The position numbers and the translations under genes are program-made. Shown here piece after piece: positions 4,324 to 54,649 of a stretch of 64,000 bases of DNA (its first letter is position 1; every line of letters begins with the position of its first letter). Below the pieces are notes generated by a model. It did no database searches. It saw only the letters and a program-made list of their open reading frames with translations, and was not told the DNA's origin. This DNA comes from Trichosphaerium sp. ATCC 40318 (Eukaryota; Protista; Tubulinea), in assembly GCA_038496445.1 (NCBI GenBank), contig JALMLS010000316.1, forward strand, positions 62,001 to 126,000. Reading direction: 5' to 3'.

Positions 4324-6579
4324 TTAAATTGTTACTTTGCCAGCTGGTACAAATCCTTCTGGTAGGAAAGCCTTGTCTACACGGTACAACTTCTCGGCAA
4401 TACCAAAGTATCCCAAATACTCGCATTCATCAGGGGTAGTATCATAGTGATAATGACCTAGGTGGGAACAAACAGTTAAGCGTATTAAAAAAAAAGAGAA
4501 AAAACAATCTAAAATTTGAACGAAAAGAACAGTACAGTGGCTTTGCGGTATATAGAACGACAAAAATGTTTTTCTAGAGCTCTAAATGGGCGTCTAAATA
4601 GGGACACTCTTTCATAAATTTACTGTAAAGAAAGATTTGAGGAAAAAAGTTTCCAGAAGCAAACTTCAGTTTTATTTGTAACTGACTACTAATATTACCT
4701 GCGTGGTTATTCTCAGCGCTTGTGAAAAAGTGAGTATGCTCTACACGTAGTTCTAACCCCATATTTTGCGTAACCTACATGCGAAAAACAATAAGAATAT
4801 GTACAAGCAACAACAAAACAGCACCTGAACGCTTAGACAAGTTGCAGGAGCTGGTACTTCATACCAATTGAGCCAATCATCGACGATTTCTTGACTAACC
4901 AAGTCTTGCTATTATTTAACGTTAAACAAGTAAAATAGGAAGCTATGTACGTACTTGAGGAAAGCAAGGCATAACGTGCGCTTTTAATTTCCCTTGCAAT
5001 AATTGAAATACGCTGAAAGAAAAAATAAGACGTTCTTGACATTGTATGCAATAGTCTCCTACCCTCCAAGTGCTACTGGATTATCGCCGTATTTCTTGAT
5101 GAGACCTTGTCTCATACATGTAATAAGAGATTTCGTCTTTCCTGTACGGACCTTGACATGTACTTTGATTACCTTGTTTATTGTTAGTTCCCTCAGCGTA
5201 CATTTACAATAACCGGTATACCTTTCCTGCACAACCTTTACTGCCAAATAAATTTGCCATTGCAGAAACATCATTACCTTAAGCTCTGTTAATTAACAAG
5301 AAAGCAACAGTAGCTTGTACTTGGATACATGCGCTGTAAAACAAGTAAGCAACGTGCTGTAACTTAATAAAAGCAACGCACCTGAACACACGAGCCATCT
5401 TCAGCGACTTCAGCAGAGCGAGTTTTTATTTGTTTTGTTCCAATATTGGTATTAGGTGCTAACTCCCTACATGCACGTTATATGTGACAGCAAAAAGGAT
5501 AGTGGACATGCCGGGCTTCGATCCCAGTACCTGTCGCATGCGAAGCGACCGTGATACCAATTACACCACACGCCCATTTTAATTAATTACCTTTTGAAAG
5601 CTGTGGCGGTTTTAAAACAAATTTAAATTTCGCTTCCCACTGGCTACCAAGCCCACTACACAACTTTAAATGTATTGCACCCAGTTTTTCTTCACAAACC
5701 CGTTAGCTACGTATAGTGTAAATGCTTATAAAACCCCACCAGCTTTAAAGGAAAATAATTAAAATGGGCGTGTGGTGTAATTGGTATCACGGTCGCTTCG
5801 CATGCGACAGGTACCACACGCCACAAAATAATGACGACTTGAGTACTAGAGGGAAGAAACAAAAGTTCAAGGGAGTACGGGGTACCAACAGCGTAGAATT
5901 TAGTGGCATTCCAAAAAAAAAATGAAAAATTGATTGTTATTTCGTACCCATTGTCGCCAATTATCTTTGGTGAAGCAGCTCCAGCACCAATGAAAAATCC
6001 GCCTTCACACGTGTCAGAACGCTATTACAAATTGGTTATAGAGCGCACCTGGCATGCCCACACGCCTAGGCATAAGTAAGCGAAGGGAAAAAGATTATTA
6101 TTCGATCAAATAGTAATGGCGTTTTTTATCGAAACTTGGCGTTTTTGTTTTGTCTGACGCTCGGTACAGCAATTCCACTTAAAAAAATACGTACTTGGCG
6201 AGTTCTTCAATATCCCATTGTTTTAATCTTAAATTAGTGAACACAACAACCAGGCAATATCATATTGCGTACGGTACGTGGTTAATAGGGTAGTCCATGT
6301 TTTTGACACCGCCAACGTCCAAAATACAATTGTCGCCGCAGATACCCTTTGCAGCCAAATCCCATGGTGGGGAACTAAGATCTGGGCAATCTACAATTGC
6401 TACTTCTACCTTGTAAACTGTTAATTATCCAAACATGAATTTAAGGTTATTACCTCCTTGTAGTTCGCTTTCAAAGCGGTTTGTAAAGTTTCTACCACTT
6501 CTTCCATTGGTGGCATATGTAGCTCCTTAACAATCATGTTACGCACCAATTTCGAACCGAGAGGTCGTTTGGTTGCCAT
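4324..6579 (-). CDS. C11orf54: Ester hydrolase C11orf54 / DUF1907 (PTD012) homologue
   Basis: Exons give VDCPDLSSPPWDLAAKGICG, GFFIGAGAASP, ANLFGSKG..KVIKVHVKVRTG..ITCMRQGL, LRVEHTHFF and GHYHYDTTPDECEYLGYF..AEKLYRVD, matching the family motifs. Confidence 0.92.
5503..5575 (-). tRNA. tRNA-Ala(CGC), intact, inside intron 5467-5947 of the C11orf54 gene
   Basis: GGGCGTG...CATGTCC-A acceptor with the G3:U70 Ala identity pair; anticodon arm GTCGC-TTCGCAT-GCGAC; T arm CTGGG-ATCGAAG-CCCGG; T5 terminator shortly downstream. Confidence 0.95.
5766..5814 (+). pseudogene. tRNA-Ala 5' fragment (nt 1-49), inverted relative to the intact gene
   Basis: Identical to tRNA nt 1-49 with ~35-40 bp of related upstream flank. 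No T arm or 3' acceptor strand. Confidence 0.9.
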
Positions 6580-6823
6580 AGTTGGTTATTAGATAGAGTA
6601 TGACCAAGCAAGATTTTTTGGTCCAAAACTGAGCTCGTGGTATGCATTATATACGGCATACTAACTGCTTGTTCTCTAAGAATAAGGTCCAAAAAACTTT
6701 GCAACTGCTGTGAACAACATCATTCTCTCGGGAGACTTAGTTATCAGCCGCTACAGGGTGCACAAGCAAAATTGGTTAAACTTAACACGTGGAAAATGAG
6801 CTTAATACGTTCAGCATAATTAG

Positions 6824-7700
6824 ATGATCTTATCACGTATTCCACACAAATTACGTGCTCACATAGCGGCTGGATCTCGTTCTAAACGTCCAGTTTGCAA
6901 AAACGGACAAACACATCATGTAGTTACCAGATCGCGTCAAAACGTTATGCAACCCTCACAATACGCCAATTATCACCGCAGCACGTTCTTAGCTCACTCA
7001 CCAAAACCCAAAGTCCCTTTAACAGACGAAAATTCGTATGATTATGTTTGAAACGTATTGTTTAACCGTACTAGAGCCATGGTACATTTCTTGCTAAAAG
7101 ATGGAACAAAACAATCTGTACGAGGCCTTTACGGTACCCACGTACTAGATTTAGCACACCAGAATGATATTGAACTCGAAGGAGCGTGCGAAGGTAAAAA
7201 ACGATCATTTGTGTTCTCTACCATACCACCTACGCGCTGGTAATTACCTAGTACTAATATGACATAGCTTCTCTTGCTTGTTCAACATGCCACGTTATTG
7301 TCAAAAAAGATTACTTTGATAAACTACCAGAGGCAGTAGAAGAGGTATAAAACGCTTCAATGCCACAACAAAAAATTCAGAGCAATTTTTCCGCTTTTCT
7401 CAAAAGACAACCTTTTTTTTCTTTGTTTATTGTTCATTTTCTACTCTCTCCTGTTCCTCACCTTGTATTCAGGAAGATGATATGCTTGACTTGGCATTTG
7501 GTTTAACAGAAACGTATGTATTATTTTACTGCAAACTAAGATATCTCTTCTTTGGGCTTGTGCTTATTACTTTGTTTTTTTTTAGTTCCAGACTTGGATG
7601 TCAAATAATTTTAACGAAAGAGCTAGATGGGATTGAACTAACACTACCTCAAGCCACACGTAACTTTGCAGTTGATGGATATGTACCAAAACCTCATTAA
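6824..7700 (+). CDS. FDX2: Mitochondrial 2Fe-2S ferredoxin (adrenodoxin/Yah1/FDX2 type)
   Basis: Arg/Ser-rich presequence; [58 protein letters not shown]. Confidence 0.95.
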
Positions 7701-8102
7701 ACACTTAGATAACAATCAATGAGAAAAAAACCCGAAAACCTAAATGACAAAAAAGATATAAACCTACGGCCAAAACAGCTAGTTAAACACGTGCCTAATT
7801 TGTAATAAACAAACTATCTGCTTACACCAAATATCTCATTTAGTACTATTTGGTTTACGGGAACGGGTAGAGGGGTAGGGGACAACAAGTACGTGCAACT
7901 TGTGGCTGTATAGTTGCGGCACAGGATGATTCATAACTTCAAGACAACACGGCTGGCTACTGTTAAGAACAACATGGGGTACTTACTTGAGGTTTCTCGT
8001 ACGCAGCATTCCACAATGCATATTCGATAGAACCCGACTTCAAACTGAGCAATGAAGCGCGAGAAAAAGCGTCACAGCTTTCAAAAGATAAATAATTAAA
8101 AT

Positions 8103-8150
8103 GGGCGTGTGGTGTAATTGGTATCACGGTCGCTTCGCATGCAACAGGTA
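8103..8150 (+). pseudogene. tRNA-Ala 5' fragment (nt 1-48)
   Basis: GGGCGTGTGGTGTAATTGGTATCACGGTCGCTTCGCATGCAACAGGTA, preceded by the shared flank cacagctttcaaaagataaataattaaaat. Confidence 0.9.
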
Positions 8151-8810
8151 TAATTTGGAAAAAAACTGGCAAAATACTGGTTTCTCTTTATCTTGTTCGT
8201 AGATTCAGGGGAGATCCACGTGCAAACAATCGGTATGTATAACTGGAAGTGCTTTATCCGTTACTTACGAAAAAGATCTGAGCTGGCCACTCTTCAAAAC
8301 TATTATAGCAATTGTAAGACGTGCAATGAGGACAATAAATAATGTCAGGAAGAATAGGTTGCTTTGTATTGCTTTGTGTTGTTCCATGCTCTTATTGTTG
8401 CAGAAAATAGAATAGAAGTTAAAATTGATTCATGCACATCAATTCACTTATTTGACCACATGTAAAATTTTCAAGAAAGTTCCAGAAACATGCGTAGTAG
8501 ACTATCGGTACAGTGGACTCTAAATGATTGTAATTGGGCGCCAGTTGCACAAGGAACTTAAGCACATCGTTAATATGGTTACAGATTGGGATGCCACTTA
8601 ATAAGAATGAAAAATGTTTGCTGAAAGAAACTCACGTATTTGGGAGAACGTGCTACTATAAAAATAACTTCGCTAACCCTTTTATACACAATGATACATA
8701 CACTTCAGATTTGTGTAGCACCATTCTTGAATAGCAAGTTCACAAGTGTCAACTATAAGTCAATTCTGTTATTTTTCATTTTTTTTATCATTTCACACGT
8801 GACAACACAA

Positions 8811-10440
8811 ATGCTTCGCGTATCTATCATTGCTATTCTCTGCGTACTTCTTACACTTGTTTTGGCCCGTAACAAGCGTACGTTAGCGCCTTCTCTTTAT
8901 CTCGTGTGTTGTGTAACACAGAAGTCTAGTCGCTTTGCCAGAGTGTAAATTCGTACCTTGTGATAACAACAACCAATGTGGAAGCTTCGCTGGTAACTGT
9001 ACAAAGTGTAACTCAACAGGATTTTGCGACTACGGTACCTGATCTTTTACCTATTGTTTTTCAACTATTAACACTAAACTCAGGTGGCGGTTGTGGCAAA
9101 ACATGTAGTGCGTCTTTTTTGTATTTTACAGAAAAATTCGTGGTTCCTATTTTTTGTCTGAGTCTGTTTTAACGCTAAATTCAGAGGTAACAAGCGATTG
9201 TAATCAAGCTGAAGACTGTAAATTCTGCAAAGACGGCGTATGTACATCTTCTGGTTCCTGCGGTGCTTACTGCTCTCAACAAAGCGACTGCGTACAAGCA
9301 GCTGGTACGAAAAGCATTTTATTAGTGTTTTAAGAAATTGGCATGCTCTCCCAATGTCGTTTTGTGATTTTTTCTGTTTGTAACCAATTGTCATCTTTAA
9401 ATTTCTGTTTATCCCGTTATGAACGATTTTAACAACTTATTTAGACTGTGGCTTTTGTATTAACAATATGTGCGTCTCTCAATGCGCCAGTCCATGTGCC
9501 GAAGGTTCGTAACCTCTTTCTAAACTTTTTCGCACGTGATAGCTTCATTAACTCTTTTATTCTTTTCTTTAAGACTCTAACTGTAACTACGCTGGGTACG
9601 TTCGCTTAGAATATTTTAAAACAAAAGCAGAAGTCACTTACGGCTCTTTAGGTCTACTTGTCCTTTCTGCGAAAACTTCATTTGTCAAAAAGGCGGTTGC
9701 GGATCAAAATGTGGTTCAGAGAGCGATTGCGCACGTTATGGTGGCGATTGTAAGTTATGTACAAACTACCCTGAATTGGGTTACGCCATGTGCACATCTG
9801 GATGTAACATGAAGTGCTCAGAAGACTCAGAATGCGCTGGATTCAGCACTAACTGCGGTAAGCCTAACTAAACTTAAACGAAAGACGCTTACTCTGATAT
9901 CTAAGGTACCTGTAACACAACCACCCACTTGTGCGAAAGCGGTACTTGTGGTACCAAATGTAACAGTAACAACGGATGGTACAATCTTGTTTGTTTTTGT
10001 ATTTCGTTTTTGTATGGTTTTCTTTTGATTTATTAACTCTTGTCCTCCAGTGAAAATTCGCCAAAGGATTCTTGCTCAAGATGTTACCAAGGTGAATGTA
10101 CTAAAGGATTAGAGTGCTTCAGCAAGTGCACAGGTATTTTACAAAGTCACATTCATCAAGAACTTTATTAACGAAACAATAGTTAACTCTGACTGTGACC
10201 AAACTGGTGACTGTGTTGTATGCAGTTCACGTGGATTCTGTCTCAGTGTTGAAAAAGCTCAACATGTTGACAATCTATCTGAACAAGAAGCTCTGTACGA
10301 TACTTTCTTCTGGAGTTTTATTTTTTTTTTGTCACGTTTTTTTTCACGTGATTTGTTTTTTTGACCATCAGCAAAGGTATACTCATTTATTTTTTAGTTT
10401 GTGGATTGCTGAGCAAACACAAGAAAATGTTCAAGCATAA
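8811..10440 (+). CDS. Secreted cysteine-rich repeat protein (many introns)
   Basis: Signal peptide MLRVSIIAILCVLLTLVLA; repeated CGxxCxxxSDC...CxxC...C units such as GGCGSKCGSESDCARYGGDCKLC and CNMKCSEDSECAG. Confidence 0.8.
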
Positions 10441-10507
10441 GTACAATGAGAATAAAACTAATAAAGACTTTTATTCAAAAAAAAATTGTTTAAAGTTTGT
10501 GGTGTAT

Positions 10508-11478
10508 CTATAAATCGCTTTTCCTTTGAATAGCTGCAATCTCATCGAGAATCTCCTTTTCTTGAGGCGCGATTTTTCTCTGAAGAAAAAGGTTAGTTGG
10601 TGAAATAAGATTAAGAAGAAGAATACTCACAGCATCTTCTAAGTGCTCTAGTGCAGTCTCGTCGTCTTCTTCATGACGAGCAATTATACCCAAACTCCAG
10701 TGAGGTACCCACTCGTCTTTATCAAGAGTAGTCAGAGCGTTAAAGACATCTCTTGCGTTAGCATACTCCTCTAAAAAAACAGTTAAAAAAACTTTCAGTG
10801 CGAGAAAGAGGTTCGTTTTTGATTTGTGCTTTATTTTTGAACTAGCGTACTCAATTCAATATACGTGGCACCCAAATTATAATACGCCCTAAGGTTCGTA
10901 CGGTCACCTTCATAAGCTTTGGCAAAGGAAAGCACGGCAGATTTATAGTCACCGCTCTGCTGTTGCGCAAGTCCCAAATTATACCTACCCAAAAAAGAGT
11001 TTAATCACGTGGGTAAACATCGATTATGGCATCGAGTACTTTTTTACTTATCAGTAAAACTAAACGTACCACATTGGAGGTTCATTCGCCTTTGTTATCG
11101 CTGTTTTATAGTGTTTAATCGCTGTACTGAGCTTTCCTGCTTGGTGGTACCTAAAAGAACCTATTTAGCCAACATACTAACCCATTATGATATCTTACGC
11201 TACTGCGGCATTATAGAGTATGGTGGCGTTCTCTCCCTGTATTTCTAACGCTTGTTCATATAACTTTATTGCCTCCTCTATTTGATCAGCGAAATGCTCT
11301 TCTTGCGCAGCTCTAGGTACTGTAAAGCGAATGCGTAACACGTGTCATCTTTTGTGACGTATTATTCTACGTACAAGAAGTACTCATGTGCTGACTCTTC
11401 AGTGTCTTCTGAGTCCTCAGGGTGTGCGAATACACAAAAAGCCAGAAGTAGCGCCAACAAGAAAAATACAAATTTCAT
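10508..11478 (-). CDS. Signal-peptide TPR protein
   Basis: MKFVFFLLALLLAFCVFA, then TPR helices EEAIKLYEQALEI..LYNAAVAY, WYNLGLAQQQSGDYKSAVLSFAKA and AYYNLGATY. Confidence 0.85.
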
Positions 11479-11734
11479 TTTGAACCAATCTGACTTTTAT
11501 CGTTGCAATACTTAACTTTTTTTCTCAAACGACCAATGGTAAAAACCTGCTAGTGGTAGTAGACAAAATTAGTGAACTTGTGATAGCAACAATATCATCA
11601 TGCTCTATAAACGCACGTACGTCTCAATAGCGGAATACAGTAAGCCTTTTTTTATCGTTTTTTCTTTTGGTTGTTTGGTGAGGTATCTATTTTGTTAGGT
11701 TAAAGTTGACAAGTTTCATTTCGATTGCACATAC

Positions 11735-12090
11735 AAGAGTATCTTCCTTGGACATCCTACTAAAGATTTGAACAGAAGGATTATTGAAGACTACCCATGC
11801 GCTCAAAAAGACTTTTCGCTTATGTTGGTCAATAAGACAACAAAGAGTCTATAATCGCTGAGAATTATACTTATTATCCCCTGTTGTACGTTCTGTTGTA
11901 CTTGTTGGACCTCTATAAGATCCAAAAATAGACGATGGATCTCATTTGATTGTAACTTATTTTTGTTCTATTAGTATATGAAGCGTTGAGTATGATTCGA
12001 GAAGTTTGAAGTTGCAAGAAATTTCTTTGAACATTGTGTTTGCACAGGAGAAGCACTCAAACTCCAGCTGAAGATATTAATAAAACATGT
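11735..12090 (+). pseudogene. Possible degraded F-box(-LRR) gene remnant
   Basis: Fragments LP/DILLKI, LMLVNKTTKSL and ENYTYYPLLYV loosely parallel the N-terminus of the adjacent F-box-LRR protein. Broken by stops and frameshifts. Confidence 0.3.
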
Positions 12091-12251
12091 GATACATTGT
12101 GAGAGTAAACATACGTTTATTGCTTATGCGATATTGCGTCTCTGGTGTTTTGATGGTAACTAGTAGAAAATCTTTTATCTGATAAATCCCAAACCATACT
12201 AGCCTAAAACTGAGCAACTAAAGCAGAAAAACACTGTGCTAAAGAAGTCTT

Positions 12252-13229
12252 TTACTTTAAAATAGTGTTGTAGCCATACTCATCAACCATTACATTCCTA
12301 CAATTTTCTGTAACGTTTTGACAACCCCATAAGTGGATGTTGTGAACACCAGCCATAGCCAAAGCTGTCAATCCTTCATCAGTAATATAAGTTAATGTTA
12401 AATGAATATTATGAACACCTGTCAATGCCGTGATGCCCTTATCTGTTATATCTACACAACATGTTAAATTTATTGTATGAACGCCACTCAATGCTTTCAG
12501 CCCTTCATCTGTGACTTGGGTGTACGCTAAGCGAATGCTATGAACACCAGCCAACGCTTTTATACCTTCATCTGTTATAGCATAACAGTCACTCAAGTTG
12601 ATAGTGTGAACTCCAGCCATAGCCAACGCTTTCAATCCTTCATCTGTCACTTTTGTTCCAGATAAATCAATGTCGTGAACACCAGCCAAAGCCTCCATAC
12701 CTTCAATTGTAAACGAGCAATACTTTAACTTTATCGAGTAAACTCCAGCCAATGCTTTCAGTCCTTCATCTGTTACTTTCGTGAAAGATAAGCCAATGGT
12801 ATGTACTCCTGCTAAAGCCTTCACCCCTTCATTTGTAACATTTGTCTCTGATAGATCAATCACATGAATACCAGCCAATACCTTAACTCCATCATCTGTG
12901 ATTTTCTTACAAGATCTCAAGCTTATATTGCGTGCACCTTTAAGCAAGCTCAAGTGAGCATCCATAGCGAAGCCTTCGAGTATAATAGTCGTATTTTGAA
13001 GCAAAGGGCTACCATTAAGAACTTTTAATTCGTCAGTGTTTGAAACATACATGTGTGGATATCCAACGTGGTTGTGAACGATGTTTCGCATGAAACGACA
13101 TGTTTGAGCTGAACGAAGGGTAAATGTACCGCTCTTCAGAATTTGAACGATTATTTCAACGGGAAGTGCAACAATGTCAAAAGTATGATTATTAGCGCAC
13201 AGTACTGTTGTGTCGTTTCGTTCGTCCAT
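12252..13229 (-). CDS. Intronless F-box + leucine-rich repeat protein (giant-virus-like)
   Basis: F-box-like ALPVEIIVQIL...AQTCRFMRNIV, followed by ~10 repeats of LAGVHTIxLSxTxVTDEGLKA. Confidence 0.88.
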   Translation of the reverse strand: MDERNDTTVLCANNHTFDIVALPVEIIVQILKSGTFTLRSAQTCRFMRNIVHNHVGYPHMYVSNTDELKVLNGSPLLQNTTIILEGFAMDAHLSLLKGARNISLRSCKKITDDGVKVLAGIHVIDLSETNVTNEGVKALAGVHTIGLSFTKVTDEGLKALAGVYSIKLKYCSFTIEGMEALAGVHDIDLSGTKVTDEGLKALAMAGVHTINLSDCYAITDEGIKALAGVHSIRLAYTQVTDEGLKALSGVHTINLTCCVDITDKGITALTGVHNIHLTLTYITDEGLTALAMAGVHNIHLWGCQNVTENCRNVMVDEYGYNTILK

Positions 13230-13501
13230 TTTATCCCAAGAGATGTTGCCTTGGCTACGAAGAGGTAAGCTTTTTGAGTGATACGATTTATGAGTGAAGG
13301 TCGTACATAGTCAAGCAATTGTACACTCGGATAATTTATACGAAAATCAACCACGTGGTTTTTGTTGCATAGCTTACGGTTTGTGAAGAAAACCTTAGTA
13401 CAAGTCATTCTAAGGTGTGTAGTGGGCTTGTTGTCAGTGGGGAGAGAATTTTAAATTCGTTTTAGAAGCGTCACAGCTTTCAAAAGATAAATAATTAAAA
13501 T

Positions 13502-13550
13502 GGGCGTGTGGTGTAATTGGTATCACGGTCGCTTTGCCTGCGACAGGCAC
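13502..13550 (+). pseudogene. tRNA-Ala 5' fragment (nt 1-49, anticodon loop diverged to TTTGCCT) with ~130 bp of upstream homology
   Basis: 13370-13501 aligns to the reverse complement of 5576-5710. The fragment is followed directly by ATTTTTT. Confidence 0.9.
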
Positions 13551-13683
13551 ATTTTTTCAGGTTTAGCTATTTTCTTGCCTACTCACCGTGTACCATAGTC
13601 AAGCGACTTCTGTCTGTAATAGAGCTATCTTTAAAGACAAAGACACCAGAAAATTAACCCTAAGGCTTTCTTCACAAAACTAG

Positions 13684-14724
13684 ATGAATATCATACAATC
13701 AATGGATTATTGTTTATTAAACCTACCTGTAGAGATACAACTCGATATTATTGATCTAGACTCTGAATTATATCCAAAATGGCCGTGTTTATCAAAAAAC
13801 AGTGCAATGGTAACGAGGTATGATTGTAACTTGGAGAAACATGGTAAGTGGACGAAAAGGACTGCACTCCAATATTGGTCACATGGTAAACGCCATGGCA
13901 CATTCAAGTGCTGGTATAGCAATGGTAGATTGAAGAGTGTATGTAATTACGTTAACGATAAACAAGAAGGGGAGTACAAGAAGTACAATCACAAAGGACG
14001 TTTGAGAGAGAAAGGAAATTATAAACAAGGTAAACTTGAGGGAGAATATAAGTGGTGGAATTCAAAGGGTATTTTACGCAAGAAGGGTTATCACGTGAAC
14101 AATAAATTGCATGGAGATTGTATACTGTTTTTTAGAGATAAAAGTAGAGCAGAGTACAAGTATTCTAATGGTAAATATGAAGGAGAGTATAAGAGGTGGT
14201 ATAGAAATGGTCAGTTAGCTTTAAAATGCTATTACACAAATGGTAAACGGGAAGGAAAGTCAATAAAGTGGAGACGAAATGGTGTGTTGGAAGAACAATG
14301 CTCTTACATAAACAATGAACTAGACAAAGAGTACAAACGCTGGCATCAAAATGGTAGATTGGCACTTCATTGTCATTATGTCAAAGGGAAACAAGAAGGA
14401 GAGTCTAAACGTTGGTATGACAATGGAATACTAAAGGAGCAATATAACTTTGTCAAGGATGAACTTGACGGAGAGTGCACTCGGTGGCACAATAATGGGC
14501 AAATGGATTTTCATTGTCATTTTGTTAAAGGCCTTATAGAAGGTGAACAAAAGTCTTGGTATCCCAATGGTCAAAAGTTCAGACATTGTAACTATAAAAA
14601 TGGTAAACGAGATGGAGAGGATAAATGGTATAGTGATGGTAAACTGATTTCAAAACACACGTATGTAAATGGCGTTAGAGTGGAGTATAAGACAAGTAAC
14701 AAAAGGAGAACTGTACTCCTATAG
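13684..14724 (+). CDS. Intronless F-box-like + MORN-variant repeat protein (giant-virus-like)
   Basis: LLNLPVEIQLDII N-terminus; ~11 repeats of GKxEGEYKxWYxNGxLxxxCxYxN. Confidence 0.88.
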   Translation: MNIIQSMDYCLLNLPVEIQLDIIDLDSELYPKWPCLSKNSAMVTRYDCNLEKHGKWTKRTALQYWSHGKRHGTFKCWYSNGRLKSVCNYVNDKQEGEYKKYNHKGRLREKGNYKQGKLEGEYKWWNSKGILRKKGYHVNNKLHGDCILFFRDKSRAEYKYSNGKYEGEYKRWYRNGQLALKCYYTNGKREGKSIKWRRNGVLEEQCSYINNELDKEYKRWHQNGRLALHCHYVKGKQEGESKRWYDNGILKEQYNFVKDELDGECTRWHNNGQMDFHCHFVKGLIEGEQKSWYPNGQKFRHCNYKNGKRDGEDKWYSDGKLISKHTYVNGVRVEYKTSNKRRTVLL

Positions 14725-28847: not shown

Positions 28848-30333
28848 TTATTCTGTAGCGTTGCCCCAAGTATTTATAAAGTATTGCGCTTCGTCAAACG
28901 TGTTCATACGAGAAAGAACAGGTTTACGTTTTGTTTGCGTTGTTTTGTGATTTGTAGTTCTTGTCGTTGATTGATAGTTGGTGTAAGGGCGTGCGTTGCT
29001 GTAATTAGCTCTCAGGGCGCTAGCAGCTTCGTTGCGTTCTGTGCGTGTAACTTTGCTTGGACCCATCTGATTAAACCAGGCTGCGTTTTCGCGGAGCATT
29101 CTCTTCTCTTTGGCCTCTTCTGTTCATTTTGTTTTGTTGCGTATAGTGTTCGTTGTAGTGTCTTATGCTGTTTACTTATTGTCTGAAGCTTAACTAACTA
29201 TAATTAACTGAAGCAAAAGTAAAGTTTAAATTGTGTCGTTAACAAAAGTATGCTACAAAGAGCAAAAGAAATACTATACTCACACTTACAAAACCCAAAG
29301 TACAACTACTAGCATACGCTAAGTTGTAGCGACACGCTCGAGAAGAAAATGAGAAACACTTTACGAAAAAAACAAGATGATAAATATGGTTTTATTTCAA
29401 CTTAGTACTTATCAACGTAGTGTATGGAACTAAGAAGATGTTTAAAGGTAGTCGTAAAACCATCAGTTATCTGTTACGTCTCAAAAGTGTTTATTGACAC
29501 AACACTCTACAAATTATTTATGGTACTTTGATTCTATTTTACATTTAATATCACATTGTTTTTGTTTATGTATTTATATAGTTTCACGTTTTGCTGATTG
29601 AGTAAGAGCAGCAATAGAACTACGTCTCTTTCTCTTTTTCTTCCATCTTAATACAAACTTTGCTGTTCCAGCTCCGTCGCCGTATGAAATAAAATATCGT
29701 TGTTGAGCACCACTTGCCAACCATGTTTTAGGTCCTTCTAGCTTAAAAGCAACAACATGCTTTCCCTGTAGATGTAAATGAGCACAAAAAAACAATCACG
29801 TGATTTACTAATGTCAGAAAAACGCCAAAATAAACGATGTAGTTTTTCCGATGTTCCGGACTGCACGTAATCCTTGAAGCGTTGGCGCAAGAAAAACGAG
29901 TAGTTTTCGAAACAGGCTAATTTCCAAAATTAACGAGGACGGAGTCCAATTTTCGAAAATTAGACGCCGGTTATGGGCTTTACCGTAAAAACACGTACAG
30001 CTTTTGTAACAGTCATTCTGGCTTCCGCACTTTTCTGCCAATTTACATCCCGAAATGATACTTGAAGCCGCTTTGATAGCTCAATAGCTCCATTATAAGT
30101 AGTATAATCTAAGTACGGAGTGTGAGTTATGTTGAATAAATTTAAGCACAAAGGCTGTTCAAGAGCAATTTTTCCTTACCACCGACTTGAATATTAAACT
30201 CGAAAGGTTTCTCTAGCCCAACGTGAACGCTCTCTCCCTCCGGGAGACCTTCACAAGTCTCAAGCTTTATATCCCATGCTTGGTATGTTACGCTCTTTAC
30301 TCTAGGACGAGAAGAAGATAATACACGCCTCAT
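28848..30333 (-). CDS. Hypothetical multi-exon protein(s)
   Basis: Consecutive minus-strand exon-like ORFs (30142-30333, 29960-30151, 29574-29795, 28848-29099) separated by T-rich intron-like spacers. May be one or two genes. Confidence 0.4.
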
Positions 30334-31635: not shown

Positions 31636-33977
31636 TTATTTATTTGTATTGTTGCTATTTCGCGCTTGTTTAACCTTGCAAACTAAACACAAAAGAGCTG
31701 GAATCGCAATAAGCAATGCAAGTAGTACAAGTCCACCAAGACCCATGACCACTTTCTGAAGAGGTTCATCCTCTTTTCCAAGTTCACTTTCTTCTTGAGC
31801 AGGCGATAGAATTGCAGTACATTGTGATCCTTTTGAATCAATAAGAGGTCCAACTGTTGAGATATTTTTGATTGTGACTTTAGCTTTTTCTAAAAGAGAG
31901 GCACTTAGTACAATAACAAGAAAACTTTAATAGAAGTGTTATAGCAATAAATACCTTGTCCAAACACACACTGTTTTACTTCTATTACTCCTTGTTTATC
32001 GAATATTATCTGACTATCTTGCTGCCACCACATTGAACCTTAAGTAAAGTATTAGAGTAAGTCAACGATAACTATAAATACCTTGGATTACTAACGGCAC
32101 TTTTAAAGTAAACAAGATTGGTACATAAAAGTCACCAAACAAAGTCCACTTGTTATTAAGACACAAACAACGTTCCAAAGGTCGAGGATATCCACCACAC
32201 ATGCACTGATCATCGGTTAGTACACCAGTTTGCTGTGCACATGTGTTTGGAGAGGTAGGTGAACCGGGTTGTTCAGTAGTCGACGGCGCTCCTGTTGTAG
32301 GAGGTACAGTTGTTGGAGGGATTGTTGTTGGCGATGTAGTTGTAGGAGATGTGGTAGTTGGAGATACGGTTGTTGGCGGCGTGGTTGTAGGAGGTAGTGT
32401 CGTTGGTGGCATGGTAGTAGGAGGTAGTGTCGTTGGTGGCATTGTTGTGGGTGGTAATGTTGTTGGCGGTGTTGTAGTTGGGGGTGCAGTTGTTGGGGGC
32501 ATGGTAGTAGGAGGTAGTGTTGTTGGGGGCATGGTAGTAGGAGGTAGTGTCGTTGGAGGCATGGTAGTAGGAGGTAGTGTCGTTGGTGGCATTGTTGTGG
32601 GTGGTAATGTTGTTGGGGGTGCAGTTGTTGGGGCCGCGGTAGGAGGTGCAGTGGTTGGAGGCATTGTTGTTGGCGGTGAAGTTGTTGGAGGCCTTGTTGT
32701 TGGGGCCGTTGGAGAAGCACATTTAGTTTTGAAGAGATTGAATTGTGCTTTTGAATTAACAAAAGAAGTCAACAGTAGATTGCAAGTACTAATATGTACA
32801 TCGAAAAAATAGTTTTCTGTAGGCACACCAATTAAGGTAATTTCTTCTACATCAGTTATAGCATAGCTACATTAGTTAGATGGCAATCGTAAATAAACAA
32901 AACGTTTAGGTGAGACTTACGTATCTACATGTATTGTATACACTCTGATCTTGCTGGCACTGGCGTCCCATGTAACAGCAACAAACCTATAAATAGCTTT
33001 ATAGTAAACAACTTTGATTGGTACACTTGGTTGATTCCCTAGTGTAAACATAGCGCCATTGTTATCTAAGAAACAAAGTAGTTTAGTTACGTGGCACCAA
33101 GACAAATAAAATTAATTCTTACCGCTAAACACTACTCGCGAATGTTGATTACGGCTTAGAGAGACGAAATTGAAATTATGTGAACTATGTGCAAACGAAA
33201 CAGCACGTGGGTGATCATATCTTGTAGTCAGAGCACCACCAAAAATATATCCTGCAATAGCACTAGTAGTTAGTCTCGAATTATGATCGGGAATAAAACC
33301 CTCCCAAGAATAGACATATAATCCGCTGGTCCAAGAGAGGTCGTAAGCCATAATCTTGGGTGCAGTAATGGTAGAAGCGAGATCATAACAACACTTCTCC
33401 CCCTCTGCCACGTTTCCATATCTCATAAAGAAACTTTTAGCGCCCGAAACCTGATAAAATGTTACATAAATATTATCCTGGACGGTTTCATGAGTTGCAG
33501 TAGGCCTCATATCTCCTATTATTCCATAACCAAGAAGATCGCTTTTGTATCTCACGGGGGAGCCATTTTCATCCAAAAATAATGCAGCGAGGTGCGTTGT
33601 TCCACCCACTGCGCAAGCATATAAAATGTTGAATTCATTGCCAGGACCATATTCAATATCGTACTGAAGCCACTTATGATTATTAGAATCAGGAGCTATG
33701 CGACAAATTGAATCGACATAAATACCAGTTATACGTCCTGTGAACTCATTATAGAAGATGCCTGAGAAGTGACTAGCAGGGGTTGAGTTAGTTGATTGAA
33801 AATAGATAGTTGTTTAACGTACTGATCAGAGTATGGGTCCTTCCACAGCATTAGGAACTGATTAGTACCAGTACTGTACGTTGTTACAATTCTCCAAGGG
33901 TTAATAGTGAGAGTGATAGCAGGTAACGATTGTACTACGCAACACAATAGTGATAGAACCAAAATACTTGTCCTCAT
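31636..33977 (-). CDS. Type I membrane/surface protein with PT-rich mucin stalk
   Basis: Signal MRTSILVLSLLCCVVQS, beta-rich ectodomain, (T[LMA]PPT)n stalk, Cys motif, TM VVMGLGGLVLLALLIAIPALLCLVC, short tail. Confidence 0.85.
32290..32710 (-). repeat. Coding 15-bp tandem repeat (PPTTx)n
   Basis: Roughly 25 degenerate units such as ggaggtagtgtcgtt / ggtggcatggtagta on the + strand. Confidence 0.95.
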
Positions 33978-44874: not shown

Positions 44875-46581
44875 TACACCTCCTACTATTCCTCTACAAA
44901 TTGAAGGACCAACTACCAAAGTTATAACTCTGGCACCAACAGATGTAGTACCAATGACAACAACTGGAGCACCGCCAAAGTGTAAGTGTTTCTACGTACA
45001 TCTAGCTCTAGGAAAACTAATGGAAGGAATTTTGTTTGATTTGCCAGATGAAATGTGGATTAAAAAAACAAACCAAACTGGCAGTATTGCTGAACTGTGT
45101 GTACAAGAAGGCTGGTGTATAAACTCTATACAACCAAATACACAAGAATGTGAGTGTTATTACTCTACTATGAGTTTACTTCTGTATAGGGTTTAAGGAG
45201 CAGTATGTATGTAACTATTGTGCTAAACATAAGCACAATGGAACTACTGTAGAAATTTTTTTAACTTGTGGGTAGGAACTAATTGATGATGTACACCTAA
45301 AATGTAAGCATGGCACATATGCTATTCAGCCTATCAAACCAAATACAGAATTAGGAGACACTACTGCTGGTACAATCAATGCTGCTCTACCAACCATTTA
45401 ATTTTGAAGACAGGATTAAAAAGTAAGACACCTTGGGACTTAAACCCTCGATTGGAGTATGCACATGGATGGGATAGATCAAACAACAAGTTGAGGTTTA
45501 ATGTCGTTAATTTGGTTTAATAGTTTATAGGGGTTTTAATAAAAAAGCAACCCATTACAGAACATTGGACCTTTTTGATGAGAATGACACTGTAGCGAAA
45601 AGAGAACTAAAGTTTCTTCATGAACACATTGCAAAAATGCACGGATATGAGCAAGTCACTGTTAAATCCACATATGCTTGCTCTTATGATGAATCTCAAG
45701 GCGACAAAACTTTGATTTTGAGTCTAGTTACACCTGGAAATGTGTATCCTGTATGTATATTCAGTTTTATTTTTATTTACTACAATGCTAGGTAATAGAA
45801 AAGCCTACAGACGTTTTTAACTTTCAGGGTAAGCCTATTAAACCAGGATACCAAAGTCACTATACAGTGGTAAACAACAAAGGACAAGCTGTAAAAGACA
45901 ATATTGACAAGTATAACTGGGATGAGTTGGTTGTGGCTCAAGGTAACTAGTCTCATGTGAGCTGTAACGGTGGCTTTCTTTTTACTGTTAATTTAGATGT
46001 GCAAGCTGTTGCACGATATATCATTACAGTCGCAAAGAGGCCAAAGAAACGGGTAGTGATCCCTAAAAAAAAAAATAAAGTAATGAAGAAAACAAAAAAG
46101 GCCAAGATCAAAACTATTGGAAGTGAAAACCTAGAAACCAATGAGGTTTCAAATTCTGAGAATGACAGCGAGTCAGATGAGTTGGTTGATGAAGAGTCAT
46201 TCAAAACTAAACGGTAAGACTGACAACACAGAATAGCTCACTAACTTACTTTCAAGAAAACTATGGGCAGCTGCAAATCCAAATCAACCTGATCAACCAA
46301 GTGTCCAAGATCTGCATGTAAAATCACTAAAAAAAGAAGTCACAAAGCTCAAACAAGAAAACAAAACCATCATTGCCGAATTTGTGGAAACAAATACCAA
46401 ATTGCAAGAGGTGCAACAAGCTAACACATTACTCCAGAAAATCAACGCCAGCCACGAGGAAAGCACAAACAACTACCTTGACAAAATCGCCAAACTGGAA
46501 GAAGAAAATGCAAACCAATGCTCTCAAATTGCCAAACTACTAGCCCGAATTGCAAATCTAGAAGGTAATGTGAGCTCTTAA
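44875..46581 (+). pseudogene. Chimeric partial paralogue: mucin fragment + C-terminal half of the ankyrin-PARP gene lacking the catalytic core
   Basis: 44875-44959 matches 60025-60099 (reverse complement). 45010-46581 matches 54809-56850 with an in-frame deletion between QVTVKS and YACSYD. Confidence 0.8.
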
Positions 46582-47336: not shown

Positions 47337-47514
47337 TGCGATTAAATACACGGTTTTAAACGTCAAGGCAATTCTTGTCTTCTGTAGTATCTGTAACACC
47401 CAAATAGTGCAACTGCTAGTATATTTACAAATTCGGCGAACGGCGATTGCACATCAGAGATGTGATTTCTTTAATTTGGGTGTTTTTGTCACAACTTCGT
47501 AAAATTCAAAGTTG

Positions 47515-47807
47515 GGGGCAGCATCGCTTTTGAGACAGTTTCGAAAATTACGACATTTTTGATTTTTGATATTTACGGCATTTCGAGAATCTTTGAGACG
47601 TTTTTACTCACCTCAGAACCGTCTTTACCAAAAATTGTTATTATGAACATTTAACTAGTATTCTATACTTATAGGCTTAAAAACAATTTTGCGATTCGTT
47701 CTTGCTGTGCGGAGGAAAAGTACTGACAGTCAAAGCAATTTTTTTCAAAACAAACTTTTTCAAAAATTTTGGACTTTCTGAAACTGTCTCAAAAGCGATG
47801 CTGCCCC
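47515..47807. mobile_element. MITE-like non-autonomous DNA element (293 bp)
   Basis: Perfect 28-bp terminal inverted repeats GGGGCAGCATCGCTTTTGAGACAGTTTC (47515-47542 / 47780-47807), AT-rich non-coding interior. Confidence 0.8.
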
Positions 47808-48529
47808 TAAAGTGACACGTGTTCAGAAGAGCCTCTGTCGCATTATCTTGTTACGCTCACCCTAAACATTAGTGCAATGCTTGATGCTATAATTTATTAC
47901 CTACGCACTGGTATTTGTGAGCGCTAAATTCTGAAGTTTTGTCAAGTAAATAGCTATTTATTGAAGTCACAATTCAAACTATGGATTGCTCCCTCTACTT
48001 GTTTCCAATTTTGTACCATTTCTTATACTCTTATAGGCCTGGAAATGTACTTTAGTGTAGATATCGATGATATCCAGCTGTAGTTCCACTGGAAGATAAT
48101 ATAGCAGTATTTGCCTATTTGGTGTTCATTAGTAAGGCCACAAATCGTATTGATCGCTTGTGTACAACTACTTTATGTTTGGACGCGATTTCTTTGAGGA
48201 TGTTTGTTAACACGTGATGAGTCGCGGTTGATTCAATAACCTTTAACAGTTGTGCAGTCAAACAAAGTGCCTTTACGCACTTTTGGTGAACTAGAACGTA
48301 GAAGATTGAAATGGCAGACAGTGACCAACCAAATCAGTAGCTTATTAATTAATTGAATTAACTTGACCACACATCACGGACAACTCATTGGTTGGTATTA
48401 ACCTATCAAGAAACCAACAAACACGAGACTTATTGTATTTTTTTTTGTTTATTGCACAATCCTTCTTTGTTTTTTATATTTTCTATTGTAATGTGGCCCC
48501 TTGTGATTTCGTGCTTGGGTAAATGTTGT

Positions 48530-51045: not shown

Positions 51046-51459
51046 TGCGTTGAGTTTTGCTTTCAAGAAAGAATGAAGAAGTAAGAACAAGTCTTATTTT
51101 TTTTTGTAGTTTTTCTAACGTGGAAAAACGGGCGTAAACCAGTACTAAAAAGTGGGTAATAGTTAACCGAAATAGAACCAAACACAAAAATAGACACAAT
51201 CCTATTTTTCTACGAAATAAAAGTCAAATACCAACAGGATTAGCTAATCCTGGTTTTTTTTCTCAGAAAAAAAGTGGGTTTGTGTTTCTCTGACACCTCC
51301 TATAATGTAGTATATTCGCATTGGTATTCATCAGCAGCAGCTGGGACGTCATGCCTGGCAGCGTCATGTTTATAGACTTGCTTCAGAGAACAGTCCGAAA
51401 TTAGCGAAATGTAAAAAAATTGATTGAATTTCTTAAGTTGGCTGTTTGGCACGGCCTAT

Positions 51460-52330
51460 CCCAGTTATATTTGTCAATATTATCTTTTACAGCTTGTCCT
51501 TTGTTGTTTACCACTGCATAGTGACTTTGGTATCCTGGTTTAATAGGCTTACCCTGGTAAGGATACCAAAGTCACTATGCAGTACAATTCTGGTAATAGA
51601 CCCACCTGCATAATGTAAAGGTGTCCATCCATCATTGTCCAACACTTGCGCCTGATTGAATTAACTGCTTACTTAATCTTTTGTGTCCATGTTTAGCTAG
51701 TATTTGTAAGCTGAAAAAGTTCGTTCAAGATCCAGTATGATTACAACAGTACCAGCACAGTATAAAGCTATCAAGAGCGCCCGCGATTCTTTCCGTAGCC
51801 GATCTTCTACGCGATCTGCTAGAAGCCAGCAACGCAGCGAGGCGCAAGAGCAACCACTCAACGTTGGAAAGTGTGAGAACATAAATTGATAGTTATTTAC
51901 AACATTACCTGCAAAGTGTAACGCTGTTTCTCCATTGTTATTTGTAACATTTATATTTGCATCAGCGTTAATCATCTTTAGTCATATTATTGTATCCACT
52001 TCATGCTCTAAAGTGTGAAAATATATCGCTTATTTACAGCAAGTACCTGCTTTGTGTAAAGCCGTCTCTTCTTCTTTATCTGTTGCGTTTATCTCCTTTT
52101 TCATCTGGATAATGTGGGCGTGTAGATAAATTACCTGTTGTAATATTCCTGAACTCTCTTTGAAACTTCTTTGGCAAATGTGGTACTCTAATAAAGTGTT
52201 GGTCTAAGGTAATAATTTATCAAAATTAACCAAAATACAATAAGTTTGCGGTGTTCTACAACACTTAAGAGAGTGTTGAGTGATAAACACTGGCTAAAAG
52301 CAAAGGACTCTGAGGAATTTTGCCTTGTCA
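51460..52330 (-). pseudogene. Collapsed paralogue of the ankyrin-PARP gene
   Basis: About three ankyrin exon remnants (INADANINVTNNNGETALHFA) joined to a PARP C-terminal piece (GKPIKPGYQSHYAVVNNKGQAVK). Upstream DNA 52330-52790 resembles 58620-58930. Confidence 0.8.
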
Positions 52331-53859: not shown

Positions 53860-54649
53860 TTATATTTTTTTATGTCTTTTCTGATTTTGGGTTGGAACCA
53901 GTCGCCACAACTTGAGTTTCATATCATTGAAGTAGAAACCATTATCATTAGTAATATCCCATCCAAGAATTCTACCAAACCCAGATACTGAGAGATCAAC
54001 ATTTACTTGCACTATAACATATGGACTGTTTTTTATTGCATTATTTGGGTTGTTTAATAGCAAAAACGGGTTAGTAGTTTCTGGTAGCTCTAAGCATCCC
54101 TCTGTTGAGTTATAGTCCTCTGTTATACCCATTGTTAAGCTCCTATTGGTTGTACACTGAGAAATCATGTAGGCGGTTAAAGACGTACCCATCACCTGCG
54201 TCATCATTTAAGTTGTGTCTGTATATTCCATAGAATTCCAGGCGTTTGAGGAACTTTGCTGACCAACCAAATTTAAGGATTACCATAGCATGACAAGCAC
54301 AGAAACATTGATGGCAAGCAATGATCACCCTCTTCCCCGCCCAATCAAAGGCGAAACTTTTTGATCCTAAAACTGAATTTATTTGAAAAACAAATTTGAG
54401 GATCCCTTTTTACCTGCATAAATACTACTTGTAAATGTATGTTCAAGAGATAAACACTTACTCGTGTGTTGTATTAGCCACCGAGACGTTAGTCTTCTCC
54501 AAACCGGTCCTGTTCTCTCTGTTGTTCACACAAAAGCCTTTTCATCTAACCATTAAAGTTGAATTCGTGTACTAGAGTTGACCATGTGTTGTTGGTAGGT
54601 ACACCATAACAAATAGAGCTAAGAATACGGAAGCTTTGAAGTGATGCAT
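53860..54649 (-). pseudogene. Disrupted duplicate of the 59.9-60.8 kb surface-protein gene
   Basis: High similarity to 60440-60810, with a frameshift, a 334-bp insertion at 54216-54549 and no PT stalk. Confidence 0.75.

Follow-up and report, generated by a model that had tools for sequence, protein, structure and literature searches.

Intact tRNA-Ala gene and its surroundings

The window, i.e. the whole 64-kb stretch of DNA that was analyzed, contains a single tRNA called by ARAGORN and Rfam, tRNA-Ala(CGC), which scores 49.4 bits against the gathering score of 29. Direct reading of its sequence identified a G3:U70 pair, an A box at nt 8-19, the B box-like GGATCGAAGCC at nt 52-62 and a T5 run 6 nt past the 3' end. 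The gene is accompanied by three truncated copies, denoted A, B and C (Table 1). The intact gene and copy A are arranged head-to-head between exons of a DUF1907-like gene, and copies B and C are intergenic, amid ordinary host genes.

The DNA is nuclear and protist-like, from a eukaryote other than human. Six-frame reading placed intron-containing host genes beside every copy, and the ORFs beside and between the copies matched only DUF1907, TPR, F-box/LRR_6 and MORN_2 in Pfam. Transposase or recombinase genes, which the preliminary description had suggested might be linked to the copies, were absent from the ORFs scanned, as were integrases and reverse transcriptases. Metagenome, viral and genome pattern scans yielded 0 matches to related DNA, and a protein word search with the fragment ORF also gave 0 matches.

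Table 1. Features of the tRNA-Ala cluster and of the adjacent host gene.
Feature	Position	Strand	Evidence or remarks
Host gene, DUF1907 / C11orf54-like	4327-6579	-	Pfam PF08925 on single-exon ORFs, unjoined
DUF1907-like exon	6263-6415	-	PF08925 profile positions 11-49
DUF1907-like exon ORF	5062-5274	-	PF08925 profile positions 151-188
DUF1907-like exon ORFs	4577-4762 (weak, E 0.095, below Pfam cut-off) and 4327-4563	-	PF08925 profile positions 241-285
Intact tRNA-Ala(CGC) gene	5503-5575 (ARAGORN/Rfam start 5502/5503)	-	ARAGORN; Rfam RF00005, 49.4 bits; direct sequence reading
Upstream flank of intact gene, -1 to about -143	5576-5718	-	Repeat pairs, BLAST, alignment
Copy A upstream flank, about 42-50 nt (about -46/-50 to -1)	5720-5765	+	Repeat search, BLAST, alignment
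Copy A, tRNA nt 1-49, 0 mismatches to intact gene (49/49)	5766-5814	+	Mismatch search
CACACGCC, reverse complement of tRNA nt 2-9	5815-5822	+	Reverse-complement match
Copy B upstream flank, about 36-38 nt	8065-8102	+	Repeat pairs, alignment
Copy B, tRNA nt 1-49, 2 mismatches (G41A, C49T)	8103-8151	+	Mismatch search, alignment
Copy C upstream flank, about 138-143 nt	13362-13501	+	Repeat pairs, BLAST, alignment
Copy C, tRNA nt 1-49, 3 mismatches (C34T, A37C, T47C)	13502-13550	+	Mismatch search, alignment
T6 run, one base (A) beyond copy C end	13552-13557	+	Sequence reading

Three truncated copies with a common right end

A search for tRNA nt 1-49 with at most 3 mismatches found four occurrences in the window (the intact gene and copies A, B and C) and 0 in 100 shuffles, so that the three dispersed 5' halves reported in the preliminary description are real. 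The G41A change of copy B disrupts the anticodon stem, and C34T turns the anticodon of copy C into TGC. All three copies are on the plus strand, that is, inverted relative to the intact gene. Their lengths are about 86, about 100 and at least 190 nt, and none is more than 8 kb from the intact gene, copy A being at a distance of 190 bp. These tRNA-Ala stubs are the only small dispersed non-coding repeat family in the 64 kb.

Each copy includes the upstream flank of the tRNA, the lengths of which (Table 1) agree essentially with the earlier estimates of ~40, ~40 and ~130 bp. As the upstream flank is included, the stubs are DNA-level copies, as had been claimed. A SINE or retrocopy derived from a tRNA begins at tRNA +1 or close to it, lacks the genomic sequence upstream, and has an A-rich or simple-repeat 3' tail and target-site duplications (TSDs). 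Here 36 to about 140 nt of the upstream flank were copied, and direct reading of the junctions revealed neither poly(A) or other 3' tails nor TSDs or flanking direct repeats, in line with the earlier rejection of a SINE-like origin. The best explanation is that copies A, B and C are non-coding partial duplicates (pseudogene stubs) of tRNA-Ala(CGC) loci made at the DNA level. They look like old, decaying scars of repair or copying, rather than genes or transposon ends.

The right end follows nt 49 in all three copies; because position 49 of copy B is T and not C, this copy ends at nt 48 or 49. The end is one base into the T stem and 2-3 nt short of the B box (nt 52-62), the position of which in tRNA genes is well established. 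Beyond it, the copies resemble neither each other nor the 3' part or trailer of the tRNA (BLAST; shuffle p 0.64-0.99), which bears out the earlier statement that the right flanks are unrelated. Were the ends scattered randomly over the gene, the probability of two more of them falling into the same 1-3-nt slot would be about 2e-4 to 2e-3, or 0.014-0.04 if only two of the events were independent. The tRNA 3' part (nt 45-74) has a single occurrence, so that no orphan 3' half, as envisaged previously, is present within the 64-kb window; a BLAST search of the window with the whole tRNA region (word size 7) found no further copies either. The window extends only 5.5 kb leftward of the cluster, so that 3' halves could be located immediately beyond its edge.

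The T6 run next to copy C, which the preliminary description also mentioned, is separated from it by one A. A comparable T run occurs within 2 nt of a random position with frequency 0.006, and it could be a Pol III terminator or a chance occurrence. There is no T4 within about 300 nt of copies A and B.

Flanks, left ends and the conserved core

The flanks of copies B and C are identical (36/36, from -36 to -1) and hence come from one source; the independent truncations may therefore number two, not three. Overall, B and C are about 6% diverged. The flank of the intact gene has about 80% identity with that of copy C (19.5% diverged), and from -36 to -11 it differs from the flank of copy A by about 20%. 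Comparison of the intact, A and B/C flanks gives an unrooted trichotomy. Given these flank variants, which reflect old divergence or another source paralogue, none of the stubs is a recent duplicate of the window's intact gene.

The flanks of copy A and of the intact gene abut head-to-head: homology between copy C and the intact gene stops at 5718, and the inverted unit of copy A starts at about 5720. As the homology limit of copy C coincides with this junction, the left end that can be detected may not be the true left end of copy C. Of the fixed right and variable left ends postulated earlier, the former are the same to the nucleotide; the detectable left ends do differ, but this half of the claim is weakened by the coincidence at 5718/5720 and by the common source of B and C.

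No differences among the four copies were found from -10 to +33, whereas divergence on the two sides of this core is 19.5% and 18.8% (p 7e-4). B and C differ at 5 positions, every one of them in nt 34-49 (p 2e-4). The identical core points to gene conversion or constraint.

Junction sequences

The right end of copy A is followed by CACACGCC, which together with the preceding AC forms a 10-nt reverse-complement match to nt 2-11 (5767-5776). Matches of at least 10 nt within 300 nt are found at 2.6% of random positions, calculated per junction, and the significance is thus only moderate. The tract reads as a snap-back templated insertion: the sense-strand junction runs on with the complement of nt 9 to 2, with AC/GT microhomology. 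This suggests that a free sense-strand 3' end was once present at nt 49 and was extended on itself. The same tract lets copy A resemble a tRNA without a T arm (Rfam tRNA match at 5767-5823 with 24.8 bits, under the gathering score).

At the left junction of copy B, AAGCG is repeated (8055-8059 and 8067-8071), which hints at microhomology. Copy C has neither microhomology nor a snap-back tract at its junctions.

Possible origin of the stubs

Synthesis during repair or replication may have proceeded from the flank into the tRNA-Ala gene and aborted at the TFIIIC-bound B box. We put this forward tentatively, as the preferred account of what was observed, namely the stub anatomy, the common end, the lack of mobile-element features, the snap-back tract and the conserved core. 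Synthesis in break repair or at a disturbed fork would have been primed at a variable point of the tRNA-Ala upstream flank by fold-back, template switching or filler-DNA synthesis, and the sense strand would have been copied into the gene. It would have aborted at nt 49, 2-3 nt before the B box, the site of the stable TFIIIC/Pol III complex that may act as a roadblock, and the aborted end would have been ligated to whichever DNA end was at hand. Variable priming, abortion at nt 49 and joining to any end would together produce variable left ends, a precise right end and unrelated right flanks.

Copy A could have arisen by fold-back on the intact gene's own flank, with -143 joined to about -46 of the inverted copy, followed by the 8-nt second snap-back and ligation. 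A fold-back with a loop of roughly 97 nt predicts exactly the observed geometry of 5718 and about 5720. As the flank of copy A is about 20% diverged, this reading needs later mutation and conversion. In subsequent concerted evolution, -10 to +33 would have been kept identical, probably by gene conversion with intact tRNA-Ala genes, and the last 16 nt at the homology edge and the outer flank would have decayed.

It is background knowledge that tRNA genes stall replication and sit at rearrangement breakpoints, the evidence being of low resolution and mostly from yeast. In yeast, tRNA genes of either orientation form protein-mediated barriers to forks and give rise to DNA damage and rearrangement (PMC8021198; PMC5413955). 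Two observations speak against a roadblock: the yeast TrAEL-seq peaks are upstream, downstream or over the first ~15 bp, not in the T stem (PMC8021198), and fork pausing and damage are stronger head-on, whereas the model needs synthesis co-directional with transcription (PMC5413955). We found no published case of DNA synthesis halting at nt 49 of a tRNA gene, and the roadblock model is based on three copies, perhaps representing two independent events, B and C having one source.

More generally, it is possible, if rather doubtful, that DNA ends form in this eukaryote at a fixed point of tRNA-Ala, namely nt 49/50, on the 5' side of the T arm and B box. Either the TFIIIC-bound B box would stop repair or replication polymerases and so leave evolutionary footprints precise to the nucleotide, or an undescribed site-specific nuclease or mobile element would use the position; gene conversion would then keep the stubs tRNA-like.

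Alternative explanations

Sequence-specific cutting or recombination of tRNA-Ala at nt 49/50 would account for the nucleotide precision in three copies. The agent could be a nuclease or mobile element such as an HUH nickase or an element of the Dada-like DDE transposon, tyrosine-recombinase or site-specific non-LTR type. Each stub would in that case mark a single side of an old insertion, inversion or one-ended event, with the partner 3' half and the element lost or located outside the window, of which only 5.5 kb lie left of the cluster. The site is 6 nt after a GC-rich hairpin, the anticodon arm, with the junction GGTAC/C in copy A, and Dada one-ended junctions with the target gene at one flank only exist (PMC3706591). 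However, right flanks with nothing in common provide no common element end, the fragments run in the opposite direction to the intact gene, the target of Dada-tA is the anticodon loop (PMC3706591), and 3' halves, TSDs and ORFs of element genes were not found in the window, where intron-containing host genes abut every copy. We thus consider such an element unlikely, and the terminus of a mobile unit or the target of a Dada or integrative element, both suggested in the preliminary description, found no support in the window for the same reasons.

It is similarly improbable that a tRNA-Ala paralogue was truncated once and the stub then re-duplicated, the agreement of the ends being part inheritance and part chance. 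The identical flanks of B and C and the unrooted trichotomy, which is compatible with a common truncated ancestor of A and B/C, favor this scenario, and AATTT in B versus ATTTTTT in C past nt 49 might mean that B holds a few bases of a C-like right flank. Yet although B and C are only about 6% diverged, any similarity between their right flanks is gone by nt 50 or, at the latest, about nt 55, and the right flank of copy A is equally unrelated; every copying event would thus have had to end where the first truncation did, and this too calls for a cause.

Genes for genome-encoded tRNA halves, another earlier suggestion, are also unlikely, since B and C have changes that disrupt the structure and a T run follows C alone. 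More broadly, we regard it as quite unlikely that the stubs are functional, either as A-box-only Pol III genes for tRNA-half-like RNAs or as selected promoter, boundary or binding modules with the -10 to +33 core. The perfect identity of this core against about 19% divergence on either side, the T6 after copy C, a TATA-like AT-rich element at -1 to -14 and the survival of an old family in recognizable form would fit. On the other hand, there is no B box, A and B lack a nearby T4, gene conversion from intact genes, combined with erosion at the edge of homology, accounts for the core equally well, and function leaves the coinciding ends unexplained. The decay in B and C (G41A, C34T, A37C) likewise argues against function as tRNA-like RNAs.

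Collapsed or chimerically joined tRNA-Ala reads are a very improbable source of the stubs: although short repeats and the 68-90-bp inverted repeat at 5527-5814 are places prone to assembler error, each copy has private substitutions and unique flanks within coherent gene structures, and three chimeric joins at one base are not expected.

Comparison with known systems

Three copies in one window are for now a well-documented curiosity. If stubs ending before the B box proved to be genome-wide and to include other tRNA families, they would be a nucleotide-precise natural record of synthesis failure at Pol III genes and would also supply host genes with small internal inverted repeats. Should they instead turn out to be confined to tRNA-Ala and associated with an element, they would indicate that a protist has a mobile element or nuclease of a new, target-specific kind.

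Separate encoding of 5' tRNA parts is shared with the split and permuted tRNA genes of Nanoarchaeum and Cyanidioschyzon, and copy A can be drawn like a T-arm-less mitochondrial tRNA. Unlike in these systems, there are no matching 3' halves in the window and no pairing leaders, the break is at 49/50 and not 37/38, and the decaying copies coexist with an intact gene in a nuclear setting.

Dada transposons also disrupt multicopy small-RNA genes, including tRNA-Ala, site-specifically, and one-ended junctions are known for them. They target tRNA and snRNA genes, are 4.7-11 kb long, encode a DDE transposase, have 6-7-bp TSDs and are flanked on either side by target halves; the insertion site of Dada-tA is TAGCAT/GCGCAA in the anticodon loop (PMC3706591). 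None of these features is seen within the 64 kb, and the stubs break at nt 49/50, where the variable loop meets the T stem.

In the Islander model of tyrosine-integrase islands in prokaryotes, as summarized in PMC4383910, a regenerated intact gene and a displaced fragment lie in direct orientation at the two island ends. A precise-ended partial tRNA gene near an intact copy is common to both cases, but there one fragment marks the far island end, whereas here there are three 5' parts, each with its promoter flank and each pointing the opposite way from the intact gene, in a eukaryotic nuclear genome, with neither an island nor an integrase or recombinase domain in the ORFs scanned.

Templated or filler-DNA insertions and fold-back inverted duplications arise in break repair or fork restart (MMBIR, polymerase-theta end joining). 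The stubs differ from such scars in being old and not traceable to a fresh donor, and from these and known tRNA barriers in the nucleotide-exact common stop inside a tRNA gene, which we did not find described in the literature; the 3'-end maps of yeast, with peaks outside the tRNA gene or at its start (PMC8021198), are unlike nt 49 here. They resemble these scars in being short local copies with variable starts, in the hints of microhomology, in the apparent snap-back piece at one junction, in the inverted copy beside its putative donor, and in having neither TSDs nor element genes.

Truncated copies of the tRNA-Ala gene

The only tRNA gene in the window encodes tRNA-Ala(CGC), as identified by ARAGORN and Rfam (tRNA model, 49.4 bits; gathering score 29). 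The gene has a G3:U70 pair, an A box at nt 8-19 and the B-box-like GGATCGAAGCC at nt 52-62 (numbered along the tRNA, with negative positions upstream), and a T5 run lies 6 nt beyond its 3' end. It is slightly unusual: the D arm (GTGTAATTGGTATCAC) is tRNA-Gln-like, and an A at position 54 of the T loop (ATCGAAG) places the B box one mismatch off the consensus.

Three stubs, copies A, B and C, contain only the 5' part of this tRNA (see the table), and no comparable match to nt 1-49 occurred in 100 shuffles. All of them end after nt 49, position 49 being T in B, and all include upstream flank: about 42-50 nt in A, about 36-38 nt in B and about 138-143 nt in C. The homology between C and the intact gene stops at 5718, and the inverted A unit starts at about 5720; hence the true left end of C is not readable from the window. 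The right flanks of the stubs showed no kinship with each other or with the rest of the window in BLAST searches and no match to the 3' part of the tRNA and its trailer above shuffles (p 0.64-0.99). The 3' part of tRNA-Ala occurs once in the 64-kb window, a permissive Rfam scan of 4.5-15.5 kb found no orphan 3' part, and word-7 BLAST of the whole tRNA region against the 64 kb gave no matches beyond the gene and copies A, B and C. The probability that random ends coincide is about 2e-4 to 2e-3 for three independent events and 0.014-0.04 for two, the sample being three stubs from one 64-kb window. The nt-49 stub family is a real feature, and the preliminary description holds in that nt 1-49 recurs three times with copied upstream flank and unrelated right flanks.

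Coordinates of the tRNA-Ala gene, its truncated copies and neighboring genes
Feature	Position	Strand	Remarks
tRNA-Ala(CGC), intact	5503-5575	-	
Copy A	5766-5814	+	tRNA nt 1-49, 0 mismatches
Copy B	8103-8151	+	tRNA nt 1-49, 2 mismatches
Copy C	13502-13550	+	tRNA nt 1-49, 3 mismatches
DUF1907-like exon	6263-6415	-	profile positions 11-49 (Pfam)
DUF1907-like exon ORF	5062-5274	-	profile positions 151-188 (Pfam)
F-box/LRR_6 gene, intronless	12252-13229	-	
MORN_2 gene, intronless	13684-14724	+	

Several further candidates were rejected. A residual T arm past nt 49 scored no better than shuffles when the right flanks were aligned locally to tRNA nt 50-73 and the trailer, and a 3' end remnant at 6048-6060 (11/13 matches) scored within noise. 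The best tile outside the family, 28987-29021 (+; GGGCGTGCGTTGCTGTAATTAGCTCTCAGGGCGCT; score 28 vs mean 14.3), weakly resembles tRNA-Ala nt 1-32 and is probably a chance likeness, without the upstream flank motif. A motif that MAFFT aligned downstream of A, B and the intact gene, at a distance of about 53 nt, has no support from BLAST. Exact-pattern searches of metagenome, viral and prokaryotic genome contigs with the flank plus tRNA, or with tRNA nt 1-27 or 1-33, found no match, and neither did a literature search with the tRNA sequence string.

Divergence of the copies

Across positions -36 to -1 of the flank, B and C match throughout (36/36); at four sites they depart from the intact gene, and at these A has the state of the intact gene. 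At -11 and about -44, A has the B/C state, and it carries about six private changes. Given these shared and private states, the intact gene, A and the B/C lineage go back to an old split into three, their flanks having diverged by about 20%. The separation of B from C is more recent (about 6% divergence over 85 nt), and no stub is a fresh copy of the window's intact gene.

The core from -10 to +33 is identical in all four sequences, whereas the intact gene and C differ at 25 of 128 nt (19.5%) from -138 to -11 (core vs flank, p 7e-4) and at 3 of 16 nt (18.8%) from +34 to +49. All five differences between B and C fall within nt 34-49 (p 2e-4); pooled, the two stubs have 0/66 changes in nt 1-33 vs 5/32 in nt 34-49 (p 0.003). 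Copy A matches the intact gene at every position between -10 and +49, with about 6 events from -36 to -11 (p 5e-4). The simplest reading of the core is gene conversion from intact tRNA-Ala genes, failing near the edge of homology; the alternative is constraint on the promoter-proximal and A-box part. Features of the tRNA are broken by G41A in the anticodon stem of B and by C34T (anticodon) and A37C in C, and two of the B/C stub changes are CpG transitions.

AAAATGG at -4 to +3 in every copy starts short plus-strand ORFs with ATG (5764-5925, 8101-8202 and 13500-13598). The short ORF beginning MGVWCNWYHGRFAC was rejected as coding: three of five B/C changes are synonymous in frame, which is not significant (p about 0.1). 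A protein word search with an antisense ORF reading through copy B, used as a stand-in for the DNA in looking for relatives, found nothing.

Genomic setting

The window is eukaryotic nuclear sequence and presumably not human, as follows from its G+C content of 35-42%, the scarcity of long ORFs, the genes interrupted by short introns (among them kinesin, DUF1907/C11orf54-like, ferredoxin-like and a Cys-rich secreted protein) and the best protein relatives, which for the F-box/LRR gene are MMETSP marine-protist transcripts (44% identity). The intact tRNA gene and copy A stand head-to-head, 190 bp apart, and are bracketed by Pfam-supported exons of the DUF1907-like gene; since these exons match the profile on both sides, both lie within its intronic DNA. 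The DUF1907-like and ferredoxin-like exons were scored singly, without joining, the middle exons being too short for scoring. The ferredoxin-like and Cys-rich genes flank copy B, and copy C lies between two divergent intronless genes.

This long intronless pair contrasts with the otherwise intron-rich region, and its MORN_2-repeat member has an F-box-like N-terminus. An exact-protein look-up of both genes was empty. A viral origin was rejected: MORN relatives on two large IMG/VR contigs have only 33% identity, and the LRR protein has no relatives in IMG/VR.

Apart from the stubs, the window has no small dispersed family of non-coding repeats, the remaining repeats being coding-repeat arrays and gene-family or segmental duplications. 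A large inverted segmental duplication (44890-46580 vs 54816-56853 and 60018-60093; blocks of 74-97% identity) is accompanied by direct duplicates (53964-54215 vs 60451-60702; 51458-51556), and these duplications include arrays coding for ankyrin-like repeats (57.4-58.2 kb) as well as paralogous ORFs. A tandem array at 32240-32720 with periods of 15/30/150 nt encodes a Thr/Pro-rich (PTTxPPTT) mucin-like protein on the minus strand, with similar tracts at 48.7 kb and 42.0 kb. A 51-nt inverted repeat (47512-47562 / 47760-47810; 86% complementary, 197-nt spacer) forms a small MITE-like structure.

The junction of copy A

Past C49, the copy reads CACACGCC, the complement of G9 to G2 backwards, which together with the preceding AC forms a 10-nt reverse-complement match to nt 2-11 of the same copy; beyond the nt-2 end of this match the DNA is unrelated. 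Matches of at least 10 nt within 300 nt occur at 2.6% of random positions in the window. With moderate support, the junction fits a free sense-strand 3' end at nt 49 that would have folded back, been extended and been ligated. The layout, in which the intact flank reaches -143 and there meets an inverted copy spanning about -46 to +49, likewise fits the expectation for a fold-back with a loop of roughly 97 nt. Because of the snap-back piece, Rfam scores 5767-5823 as a tRNA without a T arm (24.8 bits, below threshold). This tRNA-like look is probably a by-product and not a gene, since copy A lacks a B box and is followed by about 300 nt without a T4 run.

The gene and the inverted copy A (5495-5830, -) form a hairpin of roughly 90 bp in the transcribed DUF1907-like intron (-180 kcal/mol, z -18.9), which might give rise to small RNAs directed against tRNA-Ala or, as DNA, be a fragile palindrome.

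Origin of the stubs

We tentatively favor copy-and-abort DNA synthesis as the source of the stubs. A broken or stalled 3' end would prime by microhomology somewhere in the tRNA-Ala flank and copy the sense strand into the gene until a stable TFIIIC/Pol III complex halted synthesis 2-3 nt short of the B box, and the aborted end would be joined to DNA elsewhere. In copy A, a microhomology of 2 nt (AC against G10-T11) would have let the nt-49 end fold back and be extended by 8 nt before ligation. Such synthesis would yield variable left ends, a fixed right end and unrelated right flanks, as well as small size, local spread, no element features and the snap-back at A. It is established that yeast tRNA genes act as protein-mediated fork barriers and give rise to damage and rearrangement; the 3'-end peaks lie either outside the gene or on its first ~15 bp, and effects are stronger head-on (PMC8021198; PMC5413955). 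Since these peaks lie elsewhere and head-on effects are stronger, an exact stop at nt 49 is what we infer; no precedent for it was found in the literature. A T-arm hairpin in the template strand was rejected as the block, the antisense T stem having an A.C mismatch and being weaker than the anticodon stem, which synthesis had passed, so that a protein roadblock seems more plausible.

Two other explanations appear unlikely, though less so than the remaining ones. A site-specific nuclease or mobile element could act at 49/50, with partners outside the window; ORFs adjoining or between the copies contain no transposase, integrase, reverse-transcriptase or HUH domains, but the window extends just 5.5 kb left of the cluster, and partner 3' halves could sit right outside it. 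Equally doubtful is one ancestral truncation with later re-copying of the stub: B and C differ by only 6% but have no right flank in common, so something would still have to account for every copy ending at the old truncation point. A function as A-box-only or regulatory units, to which constraint on the core would correspond, is improbable, and an assembly artefact is scarcely credible. Overall, the stubs resemble old scars left by repair or copying at tRNA-Ala loci, partly homogenized with live genes.

Comparison with known systems

The preliminary description excluded SINE-type retrocopies, and we agree, because the upstream flank was copied and tails and target-site duplications are absent. 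The causes it proposed find no support here. Genes for tRNA halves are unlikely, since only C has a T-run (T6, one base past its end; background frequency 0.006) and both B and C show decay. Elements of the Dada type are DDE transposons of 4.7-11 kb with 6-7-bp target-site duplications and target halves on both sides, and Dada-tA inserts into the anticodon loop (PMC3706591); the stubs have none of these features. Integrative elements were also suggested, and no integrase was found here; integrase islands carry an integrase, and their displaced fragment has the same orientation as the regenerated gene (PMC4383910), whereas all three stubs run opposite to the intact gene.
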